From Glycera tridactyla (taxonomy: Eukaryota), in assembly GCA_965644265.1 (NCBI GenBank), contig OZ286459.1, positions 114,390,001 to 114,454,000 of the forward strand: a stretch of DNA of 64,000 nt, in the 5' to 3' direction. The notes beneath the pieces are model-generated. The model worked only from the letters and a program-made list of their open reading frames with translations. It ran no database searches and was not told the origin of the DNA. A program made the position numbers and the translations under genes. Below are positions 5,876-17,122 of this stretch, one piece after another (the first letter of the stretch is position 1; every line of letters begins with the position of its first letter).

Positions 5876-6078
5876 CCATGTGAATCAACCCAATGCTCAC
5901 AGGGTAACACTGTAGTCAACATTTATAACATAAATGACAGCTCAAGTGTCTAAGAATTTCGTGATTTAGCTTTTTGTTAGGGACCCAGATGGATATTGAA
6001 TGATCCCACCCGCGCCCATTGCATGGACGTCACAATATAGCACATAAGGAGCTGACGTGACGTTAAACTCCAACCAAT
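5876..6078 (+). mobile_element. SINE-like family A copy (a partial copy also at about 5571-5680)
   Basis: Colinear with the copies at 14953 and 16381. Confidence 0.75.
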
Positions 6079-7891
6079 CGATCAACATGAGATGAACACC
6101 CAAGTACCCAATATGTGATCTCACTAGTGAAATTTGTGAAACGGATTTATGAAGTCGTATTCTTGTCTTCGTGTCATCTGCCCCATCCGGGGACATTATG
6201 ATAAGGATATCGCTTGTCATACCACAAATACCGCTGAATGCACGATATATACATCTGGGTCACTGTAGGCACTGTCTCCTGCTTTTGGACCATCATAACA
6301 GAAATGACACCTTGAGTGTCTGTGAATTTCATAAATTTACCCCTTCCACTGGGGGCCTGGATGTAACAACAGCAGCAGCAGCAGAGGTAACAACAACAAC
6401 AACAGCAACAACGTCTTGTCGGAAGATACCAGTGGTTAAACCATCTAATTTCCATACCACAAACACCTCTGAATCTACGAGATATATACCAGAGGAACTG
6501 TCTCCTGGTCACGGATATTACCTCGGAGGGTATCAAACGCAAGTTCAGATCATCTATCTTCGGCATAGAATGATCATATCACATTAGGCGGGACTCCATG
6601 ATATTTGAATCGGACTTCGACGTCGTTGAATCAGAGGGCAGTCAGTCAGTCACATCTTTCGGAATACGAAATGACTAATTGATCGGTTAAAGAGCATGCC
6701 CCAAACTGTACGATTATATGTCATGTGTTCCCGATCCCGAAAAGCTGGATGATCTGTCCCCCACTGACACCACTAGACACTTGATGATAGGGAACCAGAA
6801 TGATTGGCAAGTGATAGTAGCTGTTGGTTCACGCACACATCTATAGTCAAACTTGTCCCAAGTATGAGGGCTGGGGACATGATAACCCTGTGCTGAAAGC
6901 AAGTTGTCCATGCTTTGTACAGGTCAATTGTAGTGAGAAATACTCAGAATGGTGTGATGGTTATGCCAAGTTTTTGCAAAGGAAGAACTCAATTGTATCT
7001 CCATAGCGAAAGACAAATTTGAACAGGCATATCTAGTTTTTCTGCTGCCTGAAGAGTGACGGTCGAGTACAGAGCGATAAACAAAGGAAAGCATCACAAA
7101 AAAACGTTTCCTTGTTCTATACTCTCGTTATACAAACATTGGTACTTGAGGTAACATTCACCCATTCTATGATACCCCAAACAAACAGGCGATTACAGGA
7201 TTCAAAGCCCTGAGGTCTCACGTTTTAAAATAGCGAGAGAATCTAGCGAGTCAGTCCGCAAACACAGCTATCATTTTTTATCTGACCAAGAGAGATATCT
7301 ATCTCTGCTCAGGAAAGCACAGGGCATACCCTCCTTATCTACTATCGACACCTTTCTACCCGAATTAGAGCATATGCTGTGATAAGAATCACTGGAATTC
7401 ACAGCCGGTACAACGGAACGGTAATTTCTCAGTGTAGTTCACGTTTGGGTTTTTAGTAGATCTCATACAAGGTAACTATGGAAATGGTGACATTAGCAGC
7501 TGACTGTGGAATTACGCTTAGTCTCCTTTGGCGGTTTACGAGTGTTCAGTTTCTAATCAAGTCTGTTCCTGTAGCACAAATATAGGGATGAAGAAATTGC
7601 CGATCCTGCATTCATATTGATAAGGAAGACTGGGCTTGAAACCTGTCTGTTGCGAGATATCTCGCAAAAATTTGGCCATCCCTCCTGCGTATGTCGCACC
7701 ACAAATGCCACGCAAAAAGAAAAAATCGCCATACCATTCTCCGTAAATTGAGATATATCTAACATGGGATACTTGTGCAGATGAACCAATGTGTCCAGGA
7801 AAAAATCAGGAGCATAGGGCAAGAAATCCCGGGACATTTTGGGGGATGTTCTCATTTGATAAAAAAGGGAACTACTTTTTCCCTCGGCACA

Positions 7892-8469
7892 TCAAAACAC
7901 AGCCGATGCACCGGCTTCAAGATTACGTTCCGTGCTTTTATACATGTCCATTTCCAAGTCAATTGAAGGTTCCTCCTCTTTGGCCTCCACCACCACCATG
8001 AGATCCTCACGTTGTTGGGCCTTTCTTGAAAGACTCTTGAAGCCAAAACGTTGCTTCTTCTTCTTTCTCGGTTTGTCCGCGAGTGGATGTTCCTCAGTAG
8101 CAGCCTCGTAGCCGTCACCATTGTAGGCGTCATTTGATCGGTCACCAGGTGGCGAGTAGTACGATTCTGGTGTCGCTTTCTCGAAACCTCCCCTGGTGAT
8201 TTCCACTGAAGATGACATTTGATCAGCCGCGGCATACACCGGATGGCTTTCATCCACCGGTCTTACAAGCCATTCTTTCAGCAGGTTACGTTGCATGCCA
8301 GTCAAGTCCGATTCTTCACAGACTGTCATGAAGCAGTTCTCTCTAGCGAGTAGGCGGAGAAGCGGCTGTCCCGGAAACACCATTTCTTCAACTTTGGGAT
8401 GACAAATGATGTGTGACATTGGCTTGTAAATTGTACGCGGCAGTCCCACCAGCACAACCATAATATCCG
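7892..8469 (-). CDS. Gene 2 terminal exon 4
   Basis: Acceptor gtttgtctttcag (phase 1), 191 open codons ending in TGA. Lies within ORF 7892-8545. Confidence 0.85.
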
Positions 8470-11400
8470 CTGAAAGACAAACACATCGTTGATTATTATA
8501 AATACATGTCACTATTCTACACAAGAACAACAGACATAACCGCAAACTTGCCGCATCCGATAACTGACCCCGACCCCATCAACAAGCAATCTCAAATGAT
8601 CCCATGATTACGATACCTCATCCAATTGTGCTCATCCTTTGTTTGCCTTCCATATAATCAGAAGAAATGCCAGTCAACCAGACAAGCAGTTACACACAGA
8701 CGGACCATCAAAGAAAACATGTGGGAATCGTAGGGGCAGAGAATTACGAGGGACTCCAATGAATTAACTTCAAGAGAGTTCCAAGAGACGCCCCGGCCAG
8801 ATGAGTCTTGAGGGCAATCTCAGTTGCCAGAAGGACCGCTTGATGCCCATCCCAGGATTGTCCTGGAAACTTTTCAAGAGATCTCCTACAAATCCTCCTC
8901 TGGCAGGAAGTTGGTATCCTGCTTCTCATTACATTCGACATTTATTTGTTGGATAAATGTGTTGATTTCTCTTGAAACTGGACCAGTCTGAACTGGATCA
9001 CAGTCGTTCGTAGGTGGACATATATGATATAGATAAAAATCTACATTCCCTCCTGCTTAAAATGCATGATGAATAACGTGTCAGATTTCAAAGTGTGGTG
9101 CACAGTAACGAAACAAATGAAATCGGAGTTTTTTGTAGGACCCAAGGCGGCCGGAGGTGCCCGAAGGGCGTCGACGGCCGCCGAAGGCGTCCTCGTGTCT
9201 GTAGTACTGTATTCACGATGTGACTGCGGGGCTGTCATTTACGACGCCATCTTTGTTTGGGTGACCTGCAGTCAACAGGTATTCAATTGGCGCTCATGAT
9301 TGGCTTCAGAAGTGATATAGCGGGAAGGACACAGATCCTTCATTCCAATGCCTGAACAATAATTCAAAGAATTAACACAAGGAAGCGAATGTCTCGCGCG
9401 ATCGATTAAATCACTGCCGGTGCGAAAGCACTACCTGGCGGCGATAGGCGGGAACTAGATGAGGCTTGGGCGGAAATTGCCGATCATCGGCGGGAGTACA
9501 CGAATGTCCGGGTCCTACGAATTTTTCATGCGGCTTGCCGCAGTTCTTGTTTGGAAGTGTTTCAATGGAATCCCCAATTGCTGGTCCCAATATAGTCTCA
9601 ACGGAATCCATGATGTATATATGGTGTATAAGTAAGAAGCGAGTTATGTGCCCCATTCGACCTCAGAGGCGGGCATCTGGTGGTGATCTCAGATATGGTG
9701 TTAGCTAGTACATTTGCATGAATGCTTGCATGCACTTCACCCCTACTCCCCCCCCCCCTGCACTTTCGTCATTGACAGACATGAAATCAGCTAGAGAGAA
9801 CCATACAGATGGATTCATGGACGGATGGGCAGGCGTGTGGATGGGCAAATAGAGAGAAACGCGGAACGACAGACAGACAGATAGGCAAACTGTATTGGGC
9901 TTATCACTCACCCCCTGCATCACAGACAGCATCATAGAGACGGTCCAGTTGTCCTTCGTTTTCCGACTCATCTAGGACCTTCTTACCAGGGCAGTGCGTA
10001 GCTACTAGCACAACTTTAGGCACCAGGAAAGCACCATCTTCCAGGTCATTTGCTGACTTGACACAGAATGACTCCAAAGCACAAGCCTCTTCCATCAAAC
10101 TAGCTATCTTCCGTTTAATAGTCTGAATCGCATCTCGATTGTAGCCCGCTACACAGACACTGCGACGTACTTCGAAAAACTGAAATGAATACGGAAGTTG
10201 ATGAACAGATACTCTCTTAGTCAAATTGAAATCGATTGACAACAAAAACAATAGCACCAACATCGACAACTTTAACAACACCGCCAACAAGTTTGACAAG
10301 AAATGACACCTTGAGTCTCTGTGAATTTCATGAATTTTCACCCTCCATTTGGGATCCAGAAGGAGGAGTCTTGGAAAGTCCCACCCATGTTCATTTCATG
10401 AAAGTCGCAATATAGTCCAGATGGTGCTGACATGACGTTAAACAAGAACCAACCAATAAACCTACGGTGATAACAATGAAATTATTATCATAATTATTAT
10501 TATTATTATTATCAATGTAATTATTATTTTTATCATAATGATAATTATGATCATAATAATAGTTATTATTATGATTATTCAGTTCGCTTATTAGTCGTGC
10601 AAAGTATTTGATTCCACGATCATAGTATGATGAATATCTATCTATTGTCCGATTTCAGGACCAGTCCATGAAGCAACAAATCTGAGAGAGTAAGCCAATA
10701 ACATATTAAATGGTAATATGAGACCATATCAGAATACATTACAGGGTCATACACACTATAGGCTATGGTTTCTTCAAGATAATTGCAGGCAAACTGGATT
10801 ATCATTGATCCTCTGTGAAGAATCAGGATGAGGTCAATGCATGTTATCATGTATACATCGCATGCTTCTATTTCACATATACATTGATGATTTCTTTATG
10901 GTACAGCATGAGCTTTGAATGTGTAATGATGAAATTAAAGTCAACGCTTATTAATGACACCTTGTGTCTCTGAATTTCATAAATTTTCACCTTTCCTTTA
11001 GGCCTGAGAGGAGGAGTCTTCCAAGATCCCATCCTTGCCCATTGCTTGCACATGTGTCGCTGACGTGACTTTGAACCAGGACCAGCCAACCAACAAACCC
11101 ACTACGCTGTAAAAGGGATCAACCAAGATACTTGCAGCGCAAACTCGGTTCCAACAACTTACAGTCAGATTCCCACTATTGCCACAACGAACAGCTCGAG
11201 CTTAATGAACTCTACTGAACACTACTGCTCTTCACTGAACTCATGGGTAGTATCGGTTGCTACTCACTGTCTTGTCTATGGGTCCTCTGCGTTTGCCAGA
11301 TGTTGCTGAGACATAATTTCCCCATCTGGAAAGAGAATATTGTGATCTGTCAGAAGGCATTGATTGAAGGGTGCCACGTGTTTTGGTGGTAGCATCTTCA

Positions 11401-14400
11401 CACTTGACCTGAATGCGAAAGTGGGCCGCACCTAGTCATGGGATGCGCGACTGCAACAAAGGGTCTGAGGATGCAAGCCAGTATGGCTGAACCATTACCC
11501 TACACTAATAGTCACAGACTGTGTGGTCTGCCCCCCCCCGTTTTGAGCTTAAAACCATGAGAGCAGGTATGAGCTACACACAACCAGGGTGGGATGGTCT
11601 GAGCACCTATCTGGGATAAGAAAATAATGGTCCTAGGTCAGCAACGGTGCTATAATGAGTGACTACAAAAACCCGCTACAGTGATACCCCTCACCAGTGT
11701 ACACATACATGCAAGCACAAAAGCAGGGTTCAAATTTCGATCGCAGACAAGAAGGTAGCGCCTCGCCAAGATTAGTCCTGTCACCCATAAATAGCTATAA
11801 AGTGTCACATGATATCAGTCCTATGTAACTTGTGACATTCCTGTACAAGGAACTGTTAAAAAAATGAATAAATAGATAAGGATTGAGGGGGTTGGTGCGT
11901 CACAATTGCTTAGAGAGGTCATGCAGTGAAGGACATGGCAGTGAGTGATGCAAGCCTTGCCCACGACTTACAGGCTATACCGGGGCAATATATCTTCACA
12001 AGTTCGTCTATCACCATCGACGTAGAGGTATTCAGTTTAATGGGTAAAGGTTCGTTCGAATCGATTGAGGTCTAACGGCATATATCAACCCACAGAGGTT
12101 TATGGTATGAAACTATTAGGTGGCCAGCAACCCACACATGTTATTGGCACAGTAGGAAGATGATTGATTGGATACGAATGGATGAATAAATGAATGAATG
12201 AAAGGGCAAAAGAAGGGCNNNNNNNNNNNNNNNNNNNNNNNNNNNNNNNNNNNNNNNNNNNNNNNNNNNNNNNNNNNNNNNNNNNNNNNNNNNNNNNNNN
12301 NNNNNNNNNNNNNNNNNNNNNNNNNNNNNNNNNNNNNNNNNNNNNNNNNNNNNNNNNNCAGGGTCAAATATATGAATGAATGGATAAACGAACGACCCAG
12401 ATCACAAGGTGATGAATGTTATCTTCAGTGTGATCACATGGTTGTATCTCAACCACATGTCGATCTCATGATTCGGGTGCGATTTCTATTGTATGCCAGA
12501 ATACTCAAGTGTTATATGACATATTAATTGATACAACTTGCTAGATATTCATAGTCTTACTCCGTCAATCCTGGGTGCATTCGTGCACCCAGGAACTATG
12601 TCTAGTTCTCCAAAGATTTAGGTCAAAGCTGTCAAAACTGGCCATCAGTTCACTTTCCACAGATCTTATCTACGAATATGCATTCGGTCAACGTTGGTTT
12701 GTCTGGTAGACACAGGGGAGGTGGAAGGGCTTCCTTGTATATTTGTGGGATTGGGAAAGCAGGGAAGTTATTGTAGTGGTTGTGAAGGAATGTGTTGCAT
12801 GGTAGCAGATTGAAAGTGCGTGAAACTACAGTTGAACCTGCTCTAAAGACCACCTCTCTATAGAGACCACCTCTCTGTAAAGACCACCCTGAGCTGCGAC
12901 CGTGGTAGTATTTTCAACAGTAAATGACCTGATTATAAAGGCCACCTGCTTATATAGACCATTTTTTGATGCGACCGAAGGCGGTCTTTATAGAGAGGTT
13001 CGACTGTACCTTGCAACTATTTGATCACAGATGACGATGTATTTCATAAATGTTCACCTCATATTGGTGTCCTTGGAGGATGGGCAGGAGTAGAAATCTT
13101 GCATGATACTACCCTTTGCATACATATCTCAGTATAGCCCAGTTATGCCAACGAGACAGCCAACAAACCAACCCGAGATCCGGATACTTGGACTCTTACC
13201 AAACATACCCCTGAGCGATACTATGAAGTGTGACGGCATTGTTAACTGTAAAACTTGTTCCTGGTTGCCCGTATACATCAGCATATACCATATTGGATAG
13301 ATATGCCCGACCCTTACCTGGTTTTCATATCATTTCAGCTTCCATTTGGAACCCAATAGGAAGAGTGATCCCACCGATGTCCTACTGCATGGACGACTCA
13401 CAACTGCCAAGCTGGTACGAGCGGGATGTTAACCTCAAATTAGTGACCAACCGGCCCAACCCTCATACGTTTCCTTGTTTCGATCTGGGCACTAAGTTCA
13501 AGATTGTTCCTATCCGGCTTGAATGTGAGCGTTCAGTCCGTTACATATTTCTTATTTACAATCAACCGTTATCACAGATTGTGGTGGGTCTGAACTGTCA
13601 TCCGTTTCCAATCGGCAACCTACTTTATAAATGTTCACCTTCCGTTGGCACCCGCGAGGAGGTTTGTTTGTTTGTTTGTCTGTTTGAGTTTAACGTCACT
13701 TAAACCCGGATGGGTTGTATTGGACTGAAAAAACTTAAAATGCTGAAGAAAACAGTCACTGCCTGCCGGGGGCCGTCCCTACTCTTTGCGAAAGACAGCA
13801 GTGGATCTTTAACGTGTGTCAAGGAAGAGACTCCTATCAACACGTCCGGCCTTTGGTATCCCAGTCGGTATGCACTCGGTTAGGAGGAGTCCTGAGTGAT
13901 CGCACCTTTTTGCCCATTGCTGGGCGTCACAAAATAGCACATGTAGCCCTTGTGTGACGTTAAACCAGAAAAAACCCAATCAACCCATCAGCTTGGGTGA
14001 GCCATGCACGAGAGGGAGAGTAATGTTTACGTAAGAACATAGATCTAGTTCTCATATATATAGAACATACGACACGCATGATCCAATGTTATGATGCATG
14101 ACACTAAACTACCCCTGCCCAGAAAATATAGTTGAGACAGTTGTTTAATACGGAATTGACTTTACATCAGAGAATCAAAACTGTCTCCGAGTTGGTACCA
14201 TTGTTATCTCGCAAGTAGCTATCTCACAGATAAGGCTTTGACACAGGTGAAGGCTTATCTATCGGTGACCTGATATGCAGCTGGCATGGGCAATCTTGAA
14301 ATCAGGAGAGTGATCAAGCTGACCTATCTTGTCAACCCTATGTCAAATTAGACTGTTTTGTCTGCGTATATTCTGCATTTCACCTCTTATCAAGAACCAT

Positions 14401-15879
14401 CGAGAGAGCTTTCGGAAATGACAAACAAAACTCCTATCAGCCCGAAATGACACATTCAAGTAGAATGCGGAAGATTATCGCGAGAGCACACCATGTTCAA
14501 TGAATGAACGTCTCAGTATAGCCCAGCTGGTCAAACATTCAATATGACTGGAGAAATTAGCCCCACCTAGGATGTAGGTCCCAAGCGGTCTTGACAGACC
14601 GATGGAAAAGTAACCACCCAGCCAACCGTCCACTATATAATCAATCACTCACTCTCTTTTGAGCCCGCCTGAAATGTGAGTTTTGAACGATCACAGCCAT
14701 AGCTATTGGATGAACGTCTCACTATAGGCCAAATGGCGCTCCCAGGACATACAACGATCAACCAATCTATCACATAATTGATCAACTTCCTTTGGGGGAC
14801 CCACGAGAAATCTTGTATGATCGCACTCATTCATAGCATGATCGTCACAATATAGCCTGTCTGTTGATCAACCAACCAACCAATCAATCAACCAAGCATC
14901 ATCTCGTGTTCAGGGTTTGTGAGGGTAACCCTAGTCTTGATACATGGATGCCATGTGAATCAATCCCATGTTCACAGGGTAGCTCCTTGAAAGAAATGAC
15001 ACATCGAGTGTGTGAATTCAAAAAAATGCCCTCTTTCAGGGACCCAGGATAAGTCTTGAATGATCCCACCCATGCCCATTGCATGGGCGTCACAATATAG
15101 CACAAATTGAGCTGACGTGACGTTAAACCACACCCAACCAATCAACAGATAGGTAATGGAGTGAGCATAAGACTGATGAGTAAGGAAAGTAATGATTGGA
15201 TAAATCGGTAGGGCTGACTCATAACCTGGCAGAAGATGATGGCTGAATGATTGATTTACAAGTGAAATGTCATCTGTTACATTTTGCTGCGTCATCAGGA
15301 CGTACGTTTGTTAGAACAAGGACGTACGAGAAAAACGGCCAAGTCGATCACAAGACTTGCTGATAAGAGGAATGTTCAATGGTTCAGATAGGCAGACAGA
15401 AAGATAAACGGACTGACTGATTGACAGGCAGACAGATAGGGAGACAGGTAGAAAGACNNNNNNNNNNNNNNNNNNNNNNNNNNNNNNNNNNNNNNNNNNN
15501 NNNNNNNNNNNNNNNNNNNNNNNNNNNNNNNNNNNNNNNNNNNNNNNNNNNNNNNNNNNNNNNNNNNNNNNNNNNNNNNNNNNNNNNNNNNNNNNNNNNN
15601 NNNNNNNNNNNNNNNNNNNNNNNNNNNNNNNNNNNNNNNNNNNNNNNNNNNGGACGGAGAGGTGGTTGGGTGGATGAACTCGCCGGAGAAAGATAATACT
15701 CGAGATGACCCCTCTCTCAGATAAAATAGCATTATATGTATATAGAATGCTTGGCCGCTTAAAGCTGACACAATATACACAAATATAGGTTACACTCACT
15801 CGTCCGAATCTTGCCGTTCTCGGTTGTATGTTTCCACTAGAGTGCTCATATTAGCACCGAAGTCGAAGAATTCATCCAT
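7892..15879 (-). CDS. Gene 2: complete 4-exon ORF (327 aa), uncharacterised protein with a candidate TIR-like/flavodoxin-like alpha/beta domain and a disordered tail
   Basis: Exons 15879-15800, 11325-11268, 10179-9912 and 8469-7892 (80+58+268+578 = 984 nt) join with GT-AG sites and intron phases 2, 0, 1, with no internal stop. Start context gcaaccATGG. Protein runs MDEFFDFGANMSTLV...RRSVCVAGYNRDAIQTIKRKIASL...PKVVLVATHCPG...DAGADIMVVLVGL...QPLLRLLARENCFMTV...ASAVF*. Confidence 0.75.
9912..10179 (-). CDS. Gene 2 exon 3 (first half of the alpha/beta domain)
   Basis: Acceptor tattcatttcag, donor G|gtgagt. Lies within ORF 9904-10341 and shows alternating hydrophobic strands and amphipathic helices. 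Confidence 0.8.
10302..10458 (+). mobile_element. SINE-like family A copy (another at about 10955-11100)
   Basis: aaatgacaccttgag...ggtgctgacatgacgttaaacaagaaccaacc. Confidence 0.75.
11268..11325 (-). CDS. Gene 2 exon 2 (E-WGNYVSATSGKRRGPIDKT)
   Basis: Acceptor attctctttccag, donor ACA|gtgagt. The phase 2 to 0 frame is open and exactly bridges exons 1 and 3. Confidence 0.65.
12829..13006. mobile_element. MITE with terminal inverted repeats and TA target duplication (Tc1/mariner-pogo type)
   Basis: ta|cagttgaacctgctctaaagacc ... ggtctttatagagaggttcgactg|ta. A degenerate copy lies at about 38629-38803 and a half copy at about 2343-2423. Confidence 0.85.
13627..13990 (+). mobile_element. SINE-like family A copy split by a family C insertion
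   Basis: Family A sequence resumes after 13881; aggagg is duplicated at 13657-13662 and 13882-13887. Confidence 0.75.
13663..13881 (-). mobile_element. SINE family C, young copy, 6-bp TSD
   Basis: TSD aggagg; highly similar to 49045-49251. Confidence 0.85.
14953..15145 (+). mobile_element. SINE-like family A copy, preceded by a fused family B fragment (about 14897-14950)
   Basis: ccatgtgaatcaatcccatg...gacgtgacgttaaaccacacccaacc. Confidence 0.75.
15800..15879 (-). CDS. Gene 2 exon 1 (MDEFFDFGANMSTLVETYNRERQDSD)
   Basis: Strong Kozak ATG, donor GA|gtgagt (phase 2), locally CpG-rich. An in-frame ATG also lies 5 codons upstream at 15894. Confidence 0.6.
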
Positions 15880-16380
15880 GGTTGCGCGGCGCATGCACTG
15901 GCCCGGAGTGTAGAACGGATGGGGCCGATGACTGTTTCTCCTTGTGTCGGGGGATCGTTAGATCAGGCTTCTGTCCCGAGGTACGGCGGAGGTGTCCAAA
16001 GTCTGTCCATATCTCCTCAAGTGCCCCTTGTGACTGTTACTCTCACTGCATGATGAGGGATACTGCGTGCTAGTTCGGTGTAAACATGGCCCACGATGTC
16101 CCGCTTCTCTCCTCGTTCCCTCAATAACCCATATATTTGTTGAGTACCATGGTATTGAGATATCCCCCTCACTCCTCATACACAGACACAGATAGACTCA
16201 CATACACACACACGCACGCACTGTCATAATAGCGCGCAAAGTCAGTCGCACACACACGCACGTACATGCACACAAACATTTCATAATTTTTCACCTCCTG
16301 TCAGGGGAATCAAAACGTTTCTTCCTTACAACACCCCCTCCCCCGCCCCTCAGTGTCAAAAAATAACTGACCTAGTGGAA

Positions 16381-16590
16381 ACCATGTGAATCAATCCCAT
16401 GTTCACAGGGTAGCAGTATGGTCAACATTTTTAACAACGGAAATGACACCTCGAGTGTATGTGAGTTTCATAAATTTTGCGCCTTCTATTGCGGAGTCAG
16501 GAGGGGTCCTGAATTATTCTACCCATGCCCACTGCATGGACATCACAATATAGCACAAATGGAGTTGACGTGACGTTAAAACAGAACCAA
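16381..16590 (+). mobile_element. SINE-like family A copy
   Basis: Long copy of the same consensus. Confidence 0.78.
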
Positions 16591-16809
16591 AAGAGAGAGG
16601 GGGAGAGAGAGGGAAAAAGGAGAGGGAGAGACAGAGACAGAGACAGACAGACATACAGAGACAGAGGCGGACAGACAGACAGAGGCAGAGGCAGAGGCAG
16701 AGGCATAGATAGACAGTTGATCAACATATTGTTTTATTTGATTCATTATGGATCTTCCGTTCCCCGTAGCATTCTTGTCTTTCTTTCTTATCATAACTCG
16801 GCCTTGCCT

Positions 16810-17122
16810 CAAGTGCTGCGCTCTGCTAATGAGAAATCATTGTTATCAGCTCGAATGTCAGCTTCCAGTCAGCTGTATAGTCAGATATGCCATCTCCAGG
16901 TTCATCATGTTCACGTTGAGGAGTTAGAGGTGTATCTGAACTGTCAGATGCTTCCGCGTGACGATCTTTCAGATTCCACATCATTTTGTGTTCAGGGTTT
17001 GTGATGGTGATATCTGCAGGGGCGAGAACGTCTAACCTCAATTGACCAAGAGCACATGGCAAACATAATATCTGGGTTGATACAAGCCGTTGAATTTCGA
17101 ACAATCAAACAAACAAACAAAC
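16810..17122 (+). mobile_element. Non-LTR/SINE-like family B copy
   Basis: Colinear with 1434-1735, with an (aaac)n tail. Confidence 0.7.

Follow-up and report, generated by a model that had tools for sequence, protein, structure and literature searches.

A four-exon gene of Glycera tridactyla encodes a member of an unnamed marine-invertebrate protein family with a predicted flavodoxin-like fold

We analysed a window of 64,000 nucleotides from Glycera tridactyla and found on its minus strand a genuine four-exon gene that is transcribed, spliced and codes for a soluble protein of 327 aa. This protein belongs, as an orthologue-grade member, to a discrete and unnamed protein family of marine invertebrates, and structure modelling shows a predicted flavodoxin-like three-layer sandwich, which is a common alpha/beta fold. 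This combination of gene, family and fold, with a role as adaptor or regulator as its conjectural part, is very probably the best explanation overall.

A first-pass annotation had proposed four exons with phases 2, 0 and 1 that join into a stop-free ORF of 327 aa. We reproduced these exon coordinates and phases, and the spliced CDS of 984 nt encodes 327 aa plus a stop. Each of the three introns has a GTGAGT donor and a CAG acceptor with a pyrimidine-rich tract. The coding part of exon 1 (15800–15879; this and all features below are on the minus strand) starts at an ATG at 15879 in the context ACCATGG, contains 26 codons plus 2 nt and ends at its donor as GA/GTGAGT, with 5′UTR lying upstream. 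Intron 1 (11326–15799), placed from splice sites and homology, measures 4474 nt as assembled. Both N gaps of the assembly (12219–12358 and 15458–15651) are inside this intron and no exon adjoins a gap; the length of the intron is uncertain because the gap lengths are estimates. Intron 1 also carries SINE-like repeat copies, and two such copies were seen in intron 2 (10180–11267; 1088 nt, GT..AG). Exon 2 (11268–11325; 58 nt) is entered in phase 2 and left in phase 0, and its product (W..GPIDKT) finishes with the conserved motif [IVF]D[KR]x. Exon 3 (9912–10179; 268 nt) encodes strands 1–3 and helices 1–3 of the domain (FFEVR...CDAG). Intron 3 (8470–9911; 1442 nt, GT..AG) separates it from the coding part of exon 4 (7892–8469, with the stop TGA at 7892–7894), which encodes strands 4–5 and helices 4–6 followed by a tail of about 110 aa. 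The 3′UTR (6390–7891) is at least about 1.5 kb long, its end being estimated from the lengths of transcript contigs, two of which (X2 and X6) extend about 1110 nt past 7500. Contig ends fall near a SINE-like copy at about 6300–6390; no poly(A) signal was found at the ends of the longest contigs, and the repeat copy lies there instead. An Rfam search of 7000–17000 gave no match, and no paralogues of the protein were found within the 64-kb window.

Transcript contigs of 1435–2799 nt came from four runs in two studies (X1, X2, X5 and X6), which were taken as RNA as a guess. Contigs of all four runs contain the exon 2–3 and exon 3–4 joints exactly: the joint of 8469 to 9912 skips 1442 nt and that of 10179 to 11268 skips 1088 nt, each reading CT..AC on the plus strand, which is GT..AG on the minus strand. 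Because there are 227 frame-compatible AG..GT segments, ten of them 58 nt long, the choice of exon 2 could not be made by sequence alone. The RNA contigs picked exon 2, and all four cover exactly 11268–11325 with 0 differences. Two of the three proposed junctions are therefore seen in RNA contigs, and the exon 1–2 joint stands by homology only. Exon 1 and this joint are probably part of the gene, since the contigs continue 180–381 nt upstream of exon 2, exon 1 encodes the N-terminal motif of the family (M-x-[DE]-[YF]-x-D-[FL]-[GN]-x-N) and a matching pair of small 5′ exons occurs in the Ridgeia gene. Of 904 coding bases compared, 12 differ between the contigs and the window; the 11 differences that are listed comprise 8 synonymous and 3 non-synonymous changes. 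By contrast, 392 nt of 3′UTR contain about 27 substitutions and 8 indels and are far more polymorphic than the CDS. Differences in the CDS are few and mostly synonymous relative to the variable 3′UTR, and the reading frame is therefore under purifying selection.

An exhaustive phmmer search with the exon 3 piece identified 39 relatives, the full-length ones being 313–347 aa with the match at the same position. Profile searches gave a further 17 and 41 matches. The relatives found number about 40–60 and are mostly unnamed transcripts (P0002, P0004, P0005, P0008, P0011, P0014 and P0019 among them). The only named ones are the hypothetical proteins CAPTEDRAFT_210277 of Capitella teleta (P0053) and NP493_548g02058 of Ridgeia piscesae (P0056). 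The window protein aligns end to end with 16 relatives at 35–50% identity over 273–320 columns, and it is 57% identical to P0002 in a keep-length alignment. It keeps 25 of the 25 columns that are invariant in these 16 relatives (M1, R51, C55, G58, E82, S83, K101, H108, G111, D116, G122, L124, D125, Y128, D129, G135, P146, Y150, H159, F167, T184, Q195, N197, W202 and H211), although such invariance is a weak discriminator given that family members are all at least 35–40% identical.

The Capitella and Ridgeia proteins and the unnamed relatives share the whole architecture of the window protein, including its N-terminal and tail motifs, whereas outside short motifs there is little conservation in the linker and tail. 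Introns before ‘xxEVR’ and after ‘xxG/A[DE]’ occupy the same positions in Capitella, Ridgeia and L003, and the small second exon of Ridgeia (about 20 aa) is equivalent to exon 2 of the window gene. The Ridgeia gene differs by one additional intron in its final exon; the Capitella model diverges at the N-terminus, possibly through misprediction. All of these relatives lack a name, a Pfam family and a published function, and a literature search with the Capitella locus tag found nothing. Searches of Pfam, NCBIfam and PADLOC with exon pieces or up to 34 members gave no usable match at E up to 10, and PDB sequence searches with exon pieces and the family profile gave no match. A word-based protein search with the exon 4 piece was also empty because the tail diverges too fast. 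Fish and amphibian relatives, which the first pass had suggested, were not found in the family searches, and membership of molluscs and echinoderms is only a lead. Atlas feature searches with exon pieces gave no usable match; with P0002 as query, the search pointed to a cluster from echinoderms (0.90) and to a DUF4630 cluster from chordates (cosine 0.86). We rejected an identity with DUF4630 (PF15443), as 0 of 34 members match PF15443 at E up to 10; a literature search for DUF4630 found no paper.

The architecture consists of a short N-terminal amphipathic helix, a linker, a five-stranded (beta-alpha)5 domain of about 170–200 residues, an additional C-terminal helix and a tail that is predicted to be disordered. 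No membrane segment was found in the window protein (maximum KD19 = 1.57). Structure models are of the relative P0002, which is 50–57% identical to the window protein. The AlphaFold model of its domain (pLDDT 91.7, pTM 0.89) has the elements b-a-b-a-b-a-b-a-b-a-a, and ten strand and helix segments picked out in the first pass match its secondary structure one for one. DSSP of two AlphaFold models gave the order E-H-E-H-E-H-E-H-E-H, five beta-alpha units along the sequence, in agreement with the (beta-alpha)5 flavodoxin-like class that had been proposed. The family consensus is CVxGxxxxxIxxVK after strand 1, strands 2, 3 and 4 end in LESFHV, AxHCPG and YxxLP, and helix 3 starts with invariant D125 and D129 and near-invariant Q123. 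Structure comparisons gave generic matches only. The best in Foldseek were flavodoxins, NDOR1, WrbA and an FMN-type oxidoreductase (E 2e-4 to 5e-3), with TM at most 0.5. In the Atlas, unnamed mollusc-rich clusters reached TM 0.74 and 0.69, compared with 0.54 for Flavodoxin_5, and were clearly above the rest. No sequence link of the domain to TIR, G-domain, flavodoxin or receiver families was detectable.

Two catalytic motifs were considered and rejected. For a protein-tyrosine-phosphatase C-X5-R motif (CVAGYNR), relatives carry Q, C, H, S or W in place of the Arg, and P0009 has V in place of the Cys. For a caspase-like His/Cys pair (THCPG), relatives have T, Y, S, Q or R instead of the Cys that follows H108, and the strand after it terminates in LP rather than Cys.

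The domain might be a very divergent member of the TIR/STIR class that acts as a self-associating, receptor-less signalling adaptor or in NAD+/nucleotide processing. The fold class suggested in the first pass under the name TIR-like was borne out. TIR, TIR_2, SEFIR and related profiles had no match at E up to 10 with window pieces, 34 members (Pfam) or 12 members (PADLOC). TIR domains of RPS4/RRS1 (4c6t and 4c6s), SARM1 (9hq0), TRIF (9dk8) and TIRAP (9fqm) are 10–14% identical to the family domain without recognisable box motifs, and judged by eye, neither TIR box 1 nor box 2 occurs in the family consensus. The structural match to TIR domains is not above that to G domains. We consider this reading unlikely. 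In the models, the shape of the domain appears as much GTPase-like as TIR-like, so that TIR-like would be one of several equal readings. The interpretation of the first pass is in this respect partly supported, with its gene model and fold class being right.

A degenerate G domain would have descended from or mimicked the small-GTPase fold, lost its P-loop and become a nucleotide-independent scaffold like CENP-M, IRGQ and AAGAB. We compared the domain with Bms1 (SSU processome entries), RABL3 (6vih), EngA (2dyk), IRGQ (8q6q), CENP-M (4p0t and 4wau) and AAGAB (9dds). Unlike G domains it has five strands by DSSP, not six, and the antiparallel beta2-beta3 hairpin is absent. It also lacks the G1–G5 motifs (GxxxxGK[ST], DxxG, NKxD and SAK), with the consensus after strand 1 reading C-V-x-G-x-x-x-x-x-I-x-x-V-K. 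Ras, Roc, MMR_HSR1 and other P-loop NTPase models of Pfam had no match, and Foldseek TM did not exceed 0.5. This origin seems improbable to us.

The top Foldseek matches, the Atlas Flavodoxin_5 clusters up to TM 0.54 and the invariant His, Asp and Tyr residues of the family favour a flavodoxin-like cofactor-binding or redox protein, or a small-molecule hydrolase of this fold class. Flavodoxins and FMN proteins (1akw, 1f4p, NDOR1 4h2d and 3k1y) have the same beta-alpha order as the family and the best Foldseek E-values (2e-4 to 1e-3). However, TM is at most 0.5 at an rmsd of 7–9 A, Pfam Flavodoxin_1 to Flavodoxin_5 had no match and the [ST]-x-[ST]-G-x-T FMN phosphate loop is lacking after strand 1, making this very unlikely. 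Lastly, the idea that the locus is a pseudogene that is transcribed, or that the ORF arose by chance in a spliced non-coding RNA, draws on read support that covers exons 2–4 and not exon 1 and on runs guessed to be RNA, but is strongly disfavoured by the frame intact over four exons, the retention of all the invariant residues, the excess of synonymous differences and the conserved intron positions and terminal motifs.

Regarding function, the protein may work as an intracellular adaptor or regulatory module, a proposal that we make tentatively. At the C-terminal edge of the sheet, the conserved loops AxHCPGxKxxD, GQLDxxYD and LPxxxY...YHP...FPxQP would make up a putative pocket that binds a partner or a small ligand, which could be nucleotide-like. 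The tail is predicted to be disordered (pLDDT about 50), yet it has conserved short motifs: EEHPxA[DE][RK] adjoining a poly-Lys/Arg cluster, FGFKS, an acidic [DS][LV]E[ML][DN]xY and a hydrophobic C-terminal residue. These motifs could dock further partners, with the basic cluster perhaps acting as a nuclear-localisation or lipid-binding patch. The invariant polar residues R51, E82, K101, H108, D116, D125, Y128, D129, Y150, H159, T184, Q195 and H211 are as compatible with an enzyme as with a binder. It is conceivable, though quite unlikely, that the family is an unrecognised animal branch of TIR-like/nucleotide-processing alpha/beta domains, an enzyme or signal generator working on its own in the cytosol of spiralian (and perhaps echinoderm) invertebrates, with an invariant His/Asp/Tyr pocket that would act on NAD+ or on some related nucleotide and with tail motifs that would link it to partners downstream.

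These results indicate that a reading without tools was able to recover a correct multi-exon gene, including exons of 58 and 80 nt, and to flag a conserved, expressed protein family that is outside all domain databases, an undescribed family with a common fold. The family alignments could serve to build a new domain model, and the locus is ready for confident annotation. Should the domain be neither a TIR-like nucleotide-processing module nor a new pseudo-GTPase scaffold, the family would be one more uncharacterised family among many whose fold is very common. If either of these readings is true, it would add an invertebrate-specific signalling component.

On the minus strand, the gene has coding exons at 15879 (ATG, context ACCATGG) to 15800, 11268–11325, 9912–10179 and from 8469 to a TGA at 7892–7894. 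The four exons join in phases 2, 0 and 1 into 984 nt, or 327 codons plus stop, which reproduces the open reading frame proposed in the first-pass annotation. All three introns have GTGAGT donors and pyrimidine-rich CAG acceptors. The stretch separating exons 1 and 3 offers 227 open in-phase AG..GT candidates for exon 2, 10 of them 58 nt long, so the sequence by itself is unable to pick this exon. An extra in-frame ATG occurs five codons 5' of the start (15880–15894, minus strand, MRRAT-MDEFF), and another 22 codons upstream the frame meets a stop. The downstream Met (15879) is where related proteins start and has the better Kozak context.

Two assembly gaps (12219–12358 and 15458–15651) fall within intron 1 (11326–15799). 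None of the four exons adjoins a gap and the reading frame crosses neither; the length of intron 1 as assembled is provisional. Among the gaps at 12219, 15458, 32744, 55397, 61027 and 62607, several are flanked by short-period low-complexity DNA that translates as (IHPS)n or (LSVC)n. These flanks suggest that the gaps stand for unresolved arrays of microsatellite type rather than for lost genes.

A search of sequencing runs returned eight matching runs from two studies, each covering about one-fifth of 7892–10179, which is approximately the exonic share. We compared contigs (1435–2799 nt) from four of these runs with 7500–11500. In each run one contig aligned exactly to 11268–11325, to 9912–10179 and then from 8469 downwards. 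The joint 10179|11268 skips 1088 nt and the joint 8469|9912 skips 1442 nt, and both have CT..AC borders on the plus strand, which is GT..AG on the strand of the gene. Although the RNA nature of the runs was guessed, the contigs are transcripts, because they are intron-less with canonical borders and come from small data sets. Thus, the second and third of the predicted junctions are confirmed to the base in four runs, and the exon 1–2 junction is supported by homology. The contigs extend 180–381 nt 5' of exon 2, space enough for exon 1 and a 5'UTR. On the 3' side they continue at least 1.1 kb beyond 7500 and end near a repeat copy, so the 3'UTR is about 1.5 kb or more.

The contigs differ from the window at 12 of 904 compared coding bases. 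Eight of the 11 listed coding differences are synonymous and three non-synonymous, two of the latter in the tail. Over 392 nt of 3'UTR (7500–7891) there are approximately 27 substitutions and eight indels. An excess of synonymous changes beside a much more variable 3'UTR is what purifying selection on a protein-coding frame produces. Divergence amounts to about 7% substitutions in the UTR, with indels in addition, against 1.3% in the coding sequence. Contigs carrying organism labels A and B share an identical set of differences from the window. The RNA samples and the assembly therefore stem from clearly distinct haplotypes or populations, and the species is highly polymorphic.

At least six copies of a SINE-like interspersed repeat (approximately 160 nt, core TGACGTGACGTTAAAC) lie in one orientation within introns, within the 3'UTR and 5' of the gene (5960–6087, 6300–6354, 10299–10462, 10948–11095, 13921–13984, 15028–15147 and 16439–16600). 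It had no match in Rfam. At 10300–10450 the summed depth reaches thousands from hundreds of different transcript contigs, so the element is present in many transcripts. Elsewhere, a 311-aa open frame (54462–55394, minus strand), with one Arg-rich stretch and a well-formed C-terminal part, extends to the gap at 55397; it has no match in Pfam and possibly belongs to another gene as an exon.

Database and fold searches used exon pieces or relatives as queries; the spliced 327-aa protein was used in scripts only. With the exon pieces as queries, Pfam, NCBIfam and the PDB sequences yielded no match, and the exon-4 piece likewise had none in a word-indexed protein search. With the exon-3 piece (89 aa), an exhaustive phmmer search across 1.84 billion representatives recovered 39 proteins. 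Among them are seven unnamed full-length relatives (313–347 aa), matched at the same position (residues ~46–140) and derived from transcript-sized contigs (Logan, JGI metatranscriptomes, ENA). A profile search built on the first alignment added the only named members, two annelid hypothetical proteins, CAPTEDRAFT_210277 (Capitella teleta) and NP493_548g02058 (Ridgeia piscesae). A domain-only profile search gave 41 matches, all close family members and none distant, with proteins longer than about 317 aa outside its length window. The family in public data thus far consists only of hypothetical proteins and unnamed transcripts, lacks a domain model and had no paper in our literature search. The fish and amphibian relatives named in the first-pass annotation were not found, and no vertebrate is among the family matches. 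No second gene copy was found in the 64-kb window. Many of the family's database "proteins" cover one exon only or read through an intron (as at 6001–8262 of L003, an unnamed genomic locus carrying a relative) from prokaryote-style calling on eukaryotic contigs within metagenome assemblies. Among such relatives, P0062 is an exon-3 equivalent and P0057, listed with P0060, carries a 22-aa intron-derived insert. These entries have no taxon label and inflate match counts.

The window protein aligns end to end with its relatives at 35–50% identity (57% to P0002, the closest full-length relative, in a keep-length alignment) and keeps all 25 columns invariant across 16 relatives. Its N-terminus (MDEFFDFGAN; family M-x-[DE]-[YF]-x-D-[FL]-[GN]-x-N), the end of exon 2 (IDKT) and the extreme C-terminus (..GASAVF; family ..GSTAVF) all align, and exon 1 and the stop are therefore independently supported. 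The intron ahead of '..EVR' and the one following '..G|A[DE]' occupy the same places in Capitella, Ridgeia and L003, and the Ridgeia gene likewise has small 5' exons (first ~35 aa, second ~20 aa).

Structure was modelled on P0002 in place of the window protein. In the full-length model pLDDT is above 90 at residues 41–240 and low in a linker (26–37) and the tail after ~245; a domain-only model (42–222) had pLDDT 91.7 and pTM 0.89. The predicted strands (53–57, 80–84, 100–106, 136–144, 181–185) and helices (60–73, a short 88–91, 124–133, 159–165, 170–177, 192–203 and a further 211–243) coincide exactly with the ten segments of the (beta-alpha)5 order proposed from sequence. The best Foldseek matches in PDB were flavodoxins, NDOR1, an FMN oxidoreductase, the IRGQ pseudo-GTPase, CENP-M and CheY receivers (E 2e-4 to 5e-3, TM 0.5 or less), and no solved structure stood out as a relative. 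According to the structure tool's own note, models with no true match usually have a best Z of 7–8. The models are best read as showing a three-layer alpha/beta sandwich of generic flavodoxin/TIR/G-domain kind. In an Atlas fold search three unnamed eukaryotic clusters scored well above the rest: one of 292 aa, mostly Mollusca (TM 0.74 by query, 159 residues at 2.9 A), and two of 284 aa each (TM 0.69), followed by flavodoxin_5 (TM 0.54). The three probably belong to this family or represent a molluscan sister family. An Atlas feature search gave an unnamed echinoderm cluster (0.90), and a range reaching molluscs and echinoderms is a lead. A weaker chordate cluster (0.86), partly DUF4630, was dropped, as no family member matches DUF4630 in Pfam.

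Invariant or near-invariant residues (window numbering) are R51 before strand 1, C55 and G58 in and after it, E82-S83 in strand 2, D-x-K-D-G-A-L-L-V-P-K101 leading into strand 3, H108-C-P-G111-x-K-x-x-D116 after it, G122-Q-L-D125-x-x-Y128-D129 opening helix 3, L-P146-x-x-x-Y150 after strand 4, Y-H159-P and F167-P-x-Q-P in the long loop and helix 4, T184 in strand 5, Q195, N197 and W202 in helix 5, and H211. The Cys of HCPG varies among members, and family sequences contain no P-loop, FMN loop or conserved C-X5-R. Several of the conserved residues sit at the usual binding-site places of such sandwiches, the C-terminal strand ends and following loops. The tail is predicted to be disordered, yet several motifs are kept across the family: EEHPxA[DE][RK] ahead of a Lys/Arg run (window protein, PRKKKKQR), FGFKS, an acidic-hydrophobic motif (DLEMDMY) and a hydrophobic last residue, often with Ser/Thr three positions earlier. 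The basic run is a plausible nuclear-localization signal. The protein has no hydrophobic segment of membrane-span length.

We tentatively favour an intracellular adaptor or regulatory protein, whose conserved loops at the sheet edge would serve as the binding site for a partner or small ligand, with further partners recruited by the tail motifs. A TIR-like domain and a pseudo-GTPase are special cases of this reading, both rather improbable, and the structural scores do not separate them. The earlier TIR-like call holds for the sandwich fold class; TIR has no lead over the flavodoxin and G-domain kinds and there is no profile-level link to any known family. The non-catalytic character proposed from a Gln at the position expected to hold Glu depends on a putative alignment; helix 3 also holds two invariant Asp, and we would call the domain neither catalytic nor catalytically dead. 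A flavodoxin-like cofactor protein, a reading to which the flavodoxin matches belong, is very unlikely. A non-functional transcript, set beside a frame under purifying selection, is extremely improbable. A TIR-like nucleotide-processing enzyme of invertebrates is doubtful, slightly more so than the two special cases. The gene belongs to an undescribed family whose fold class, the flavodoxin/TIR-like sandwich, is among the commonest.
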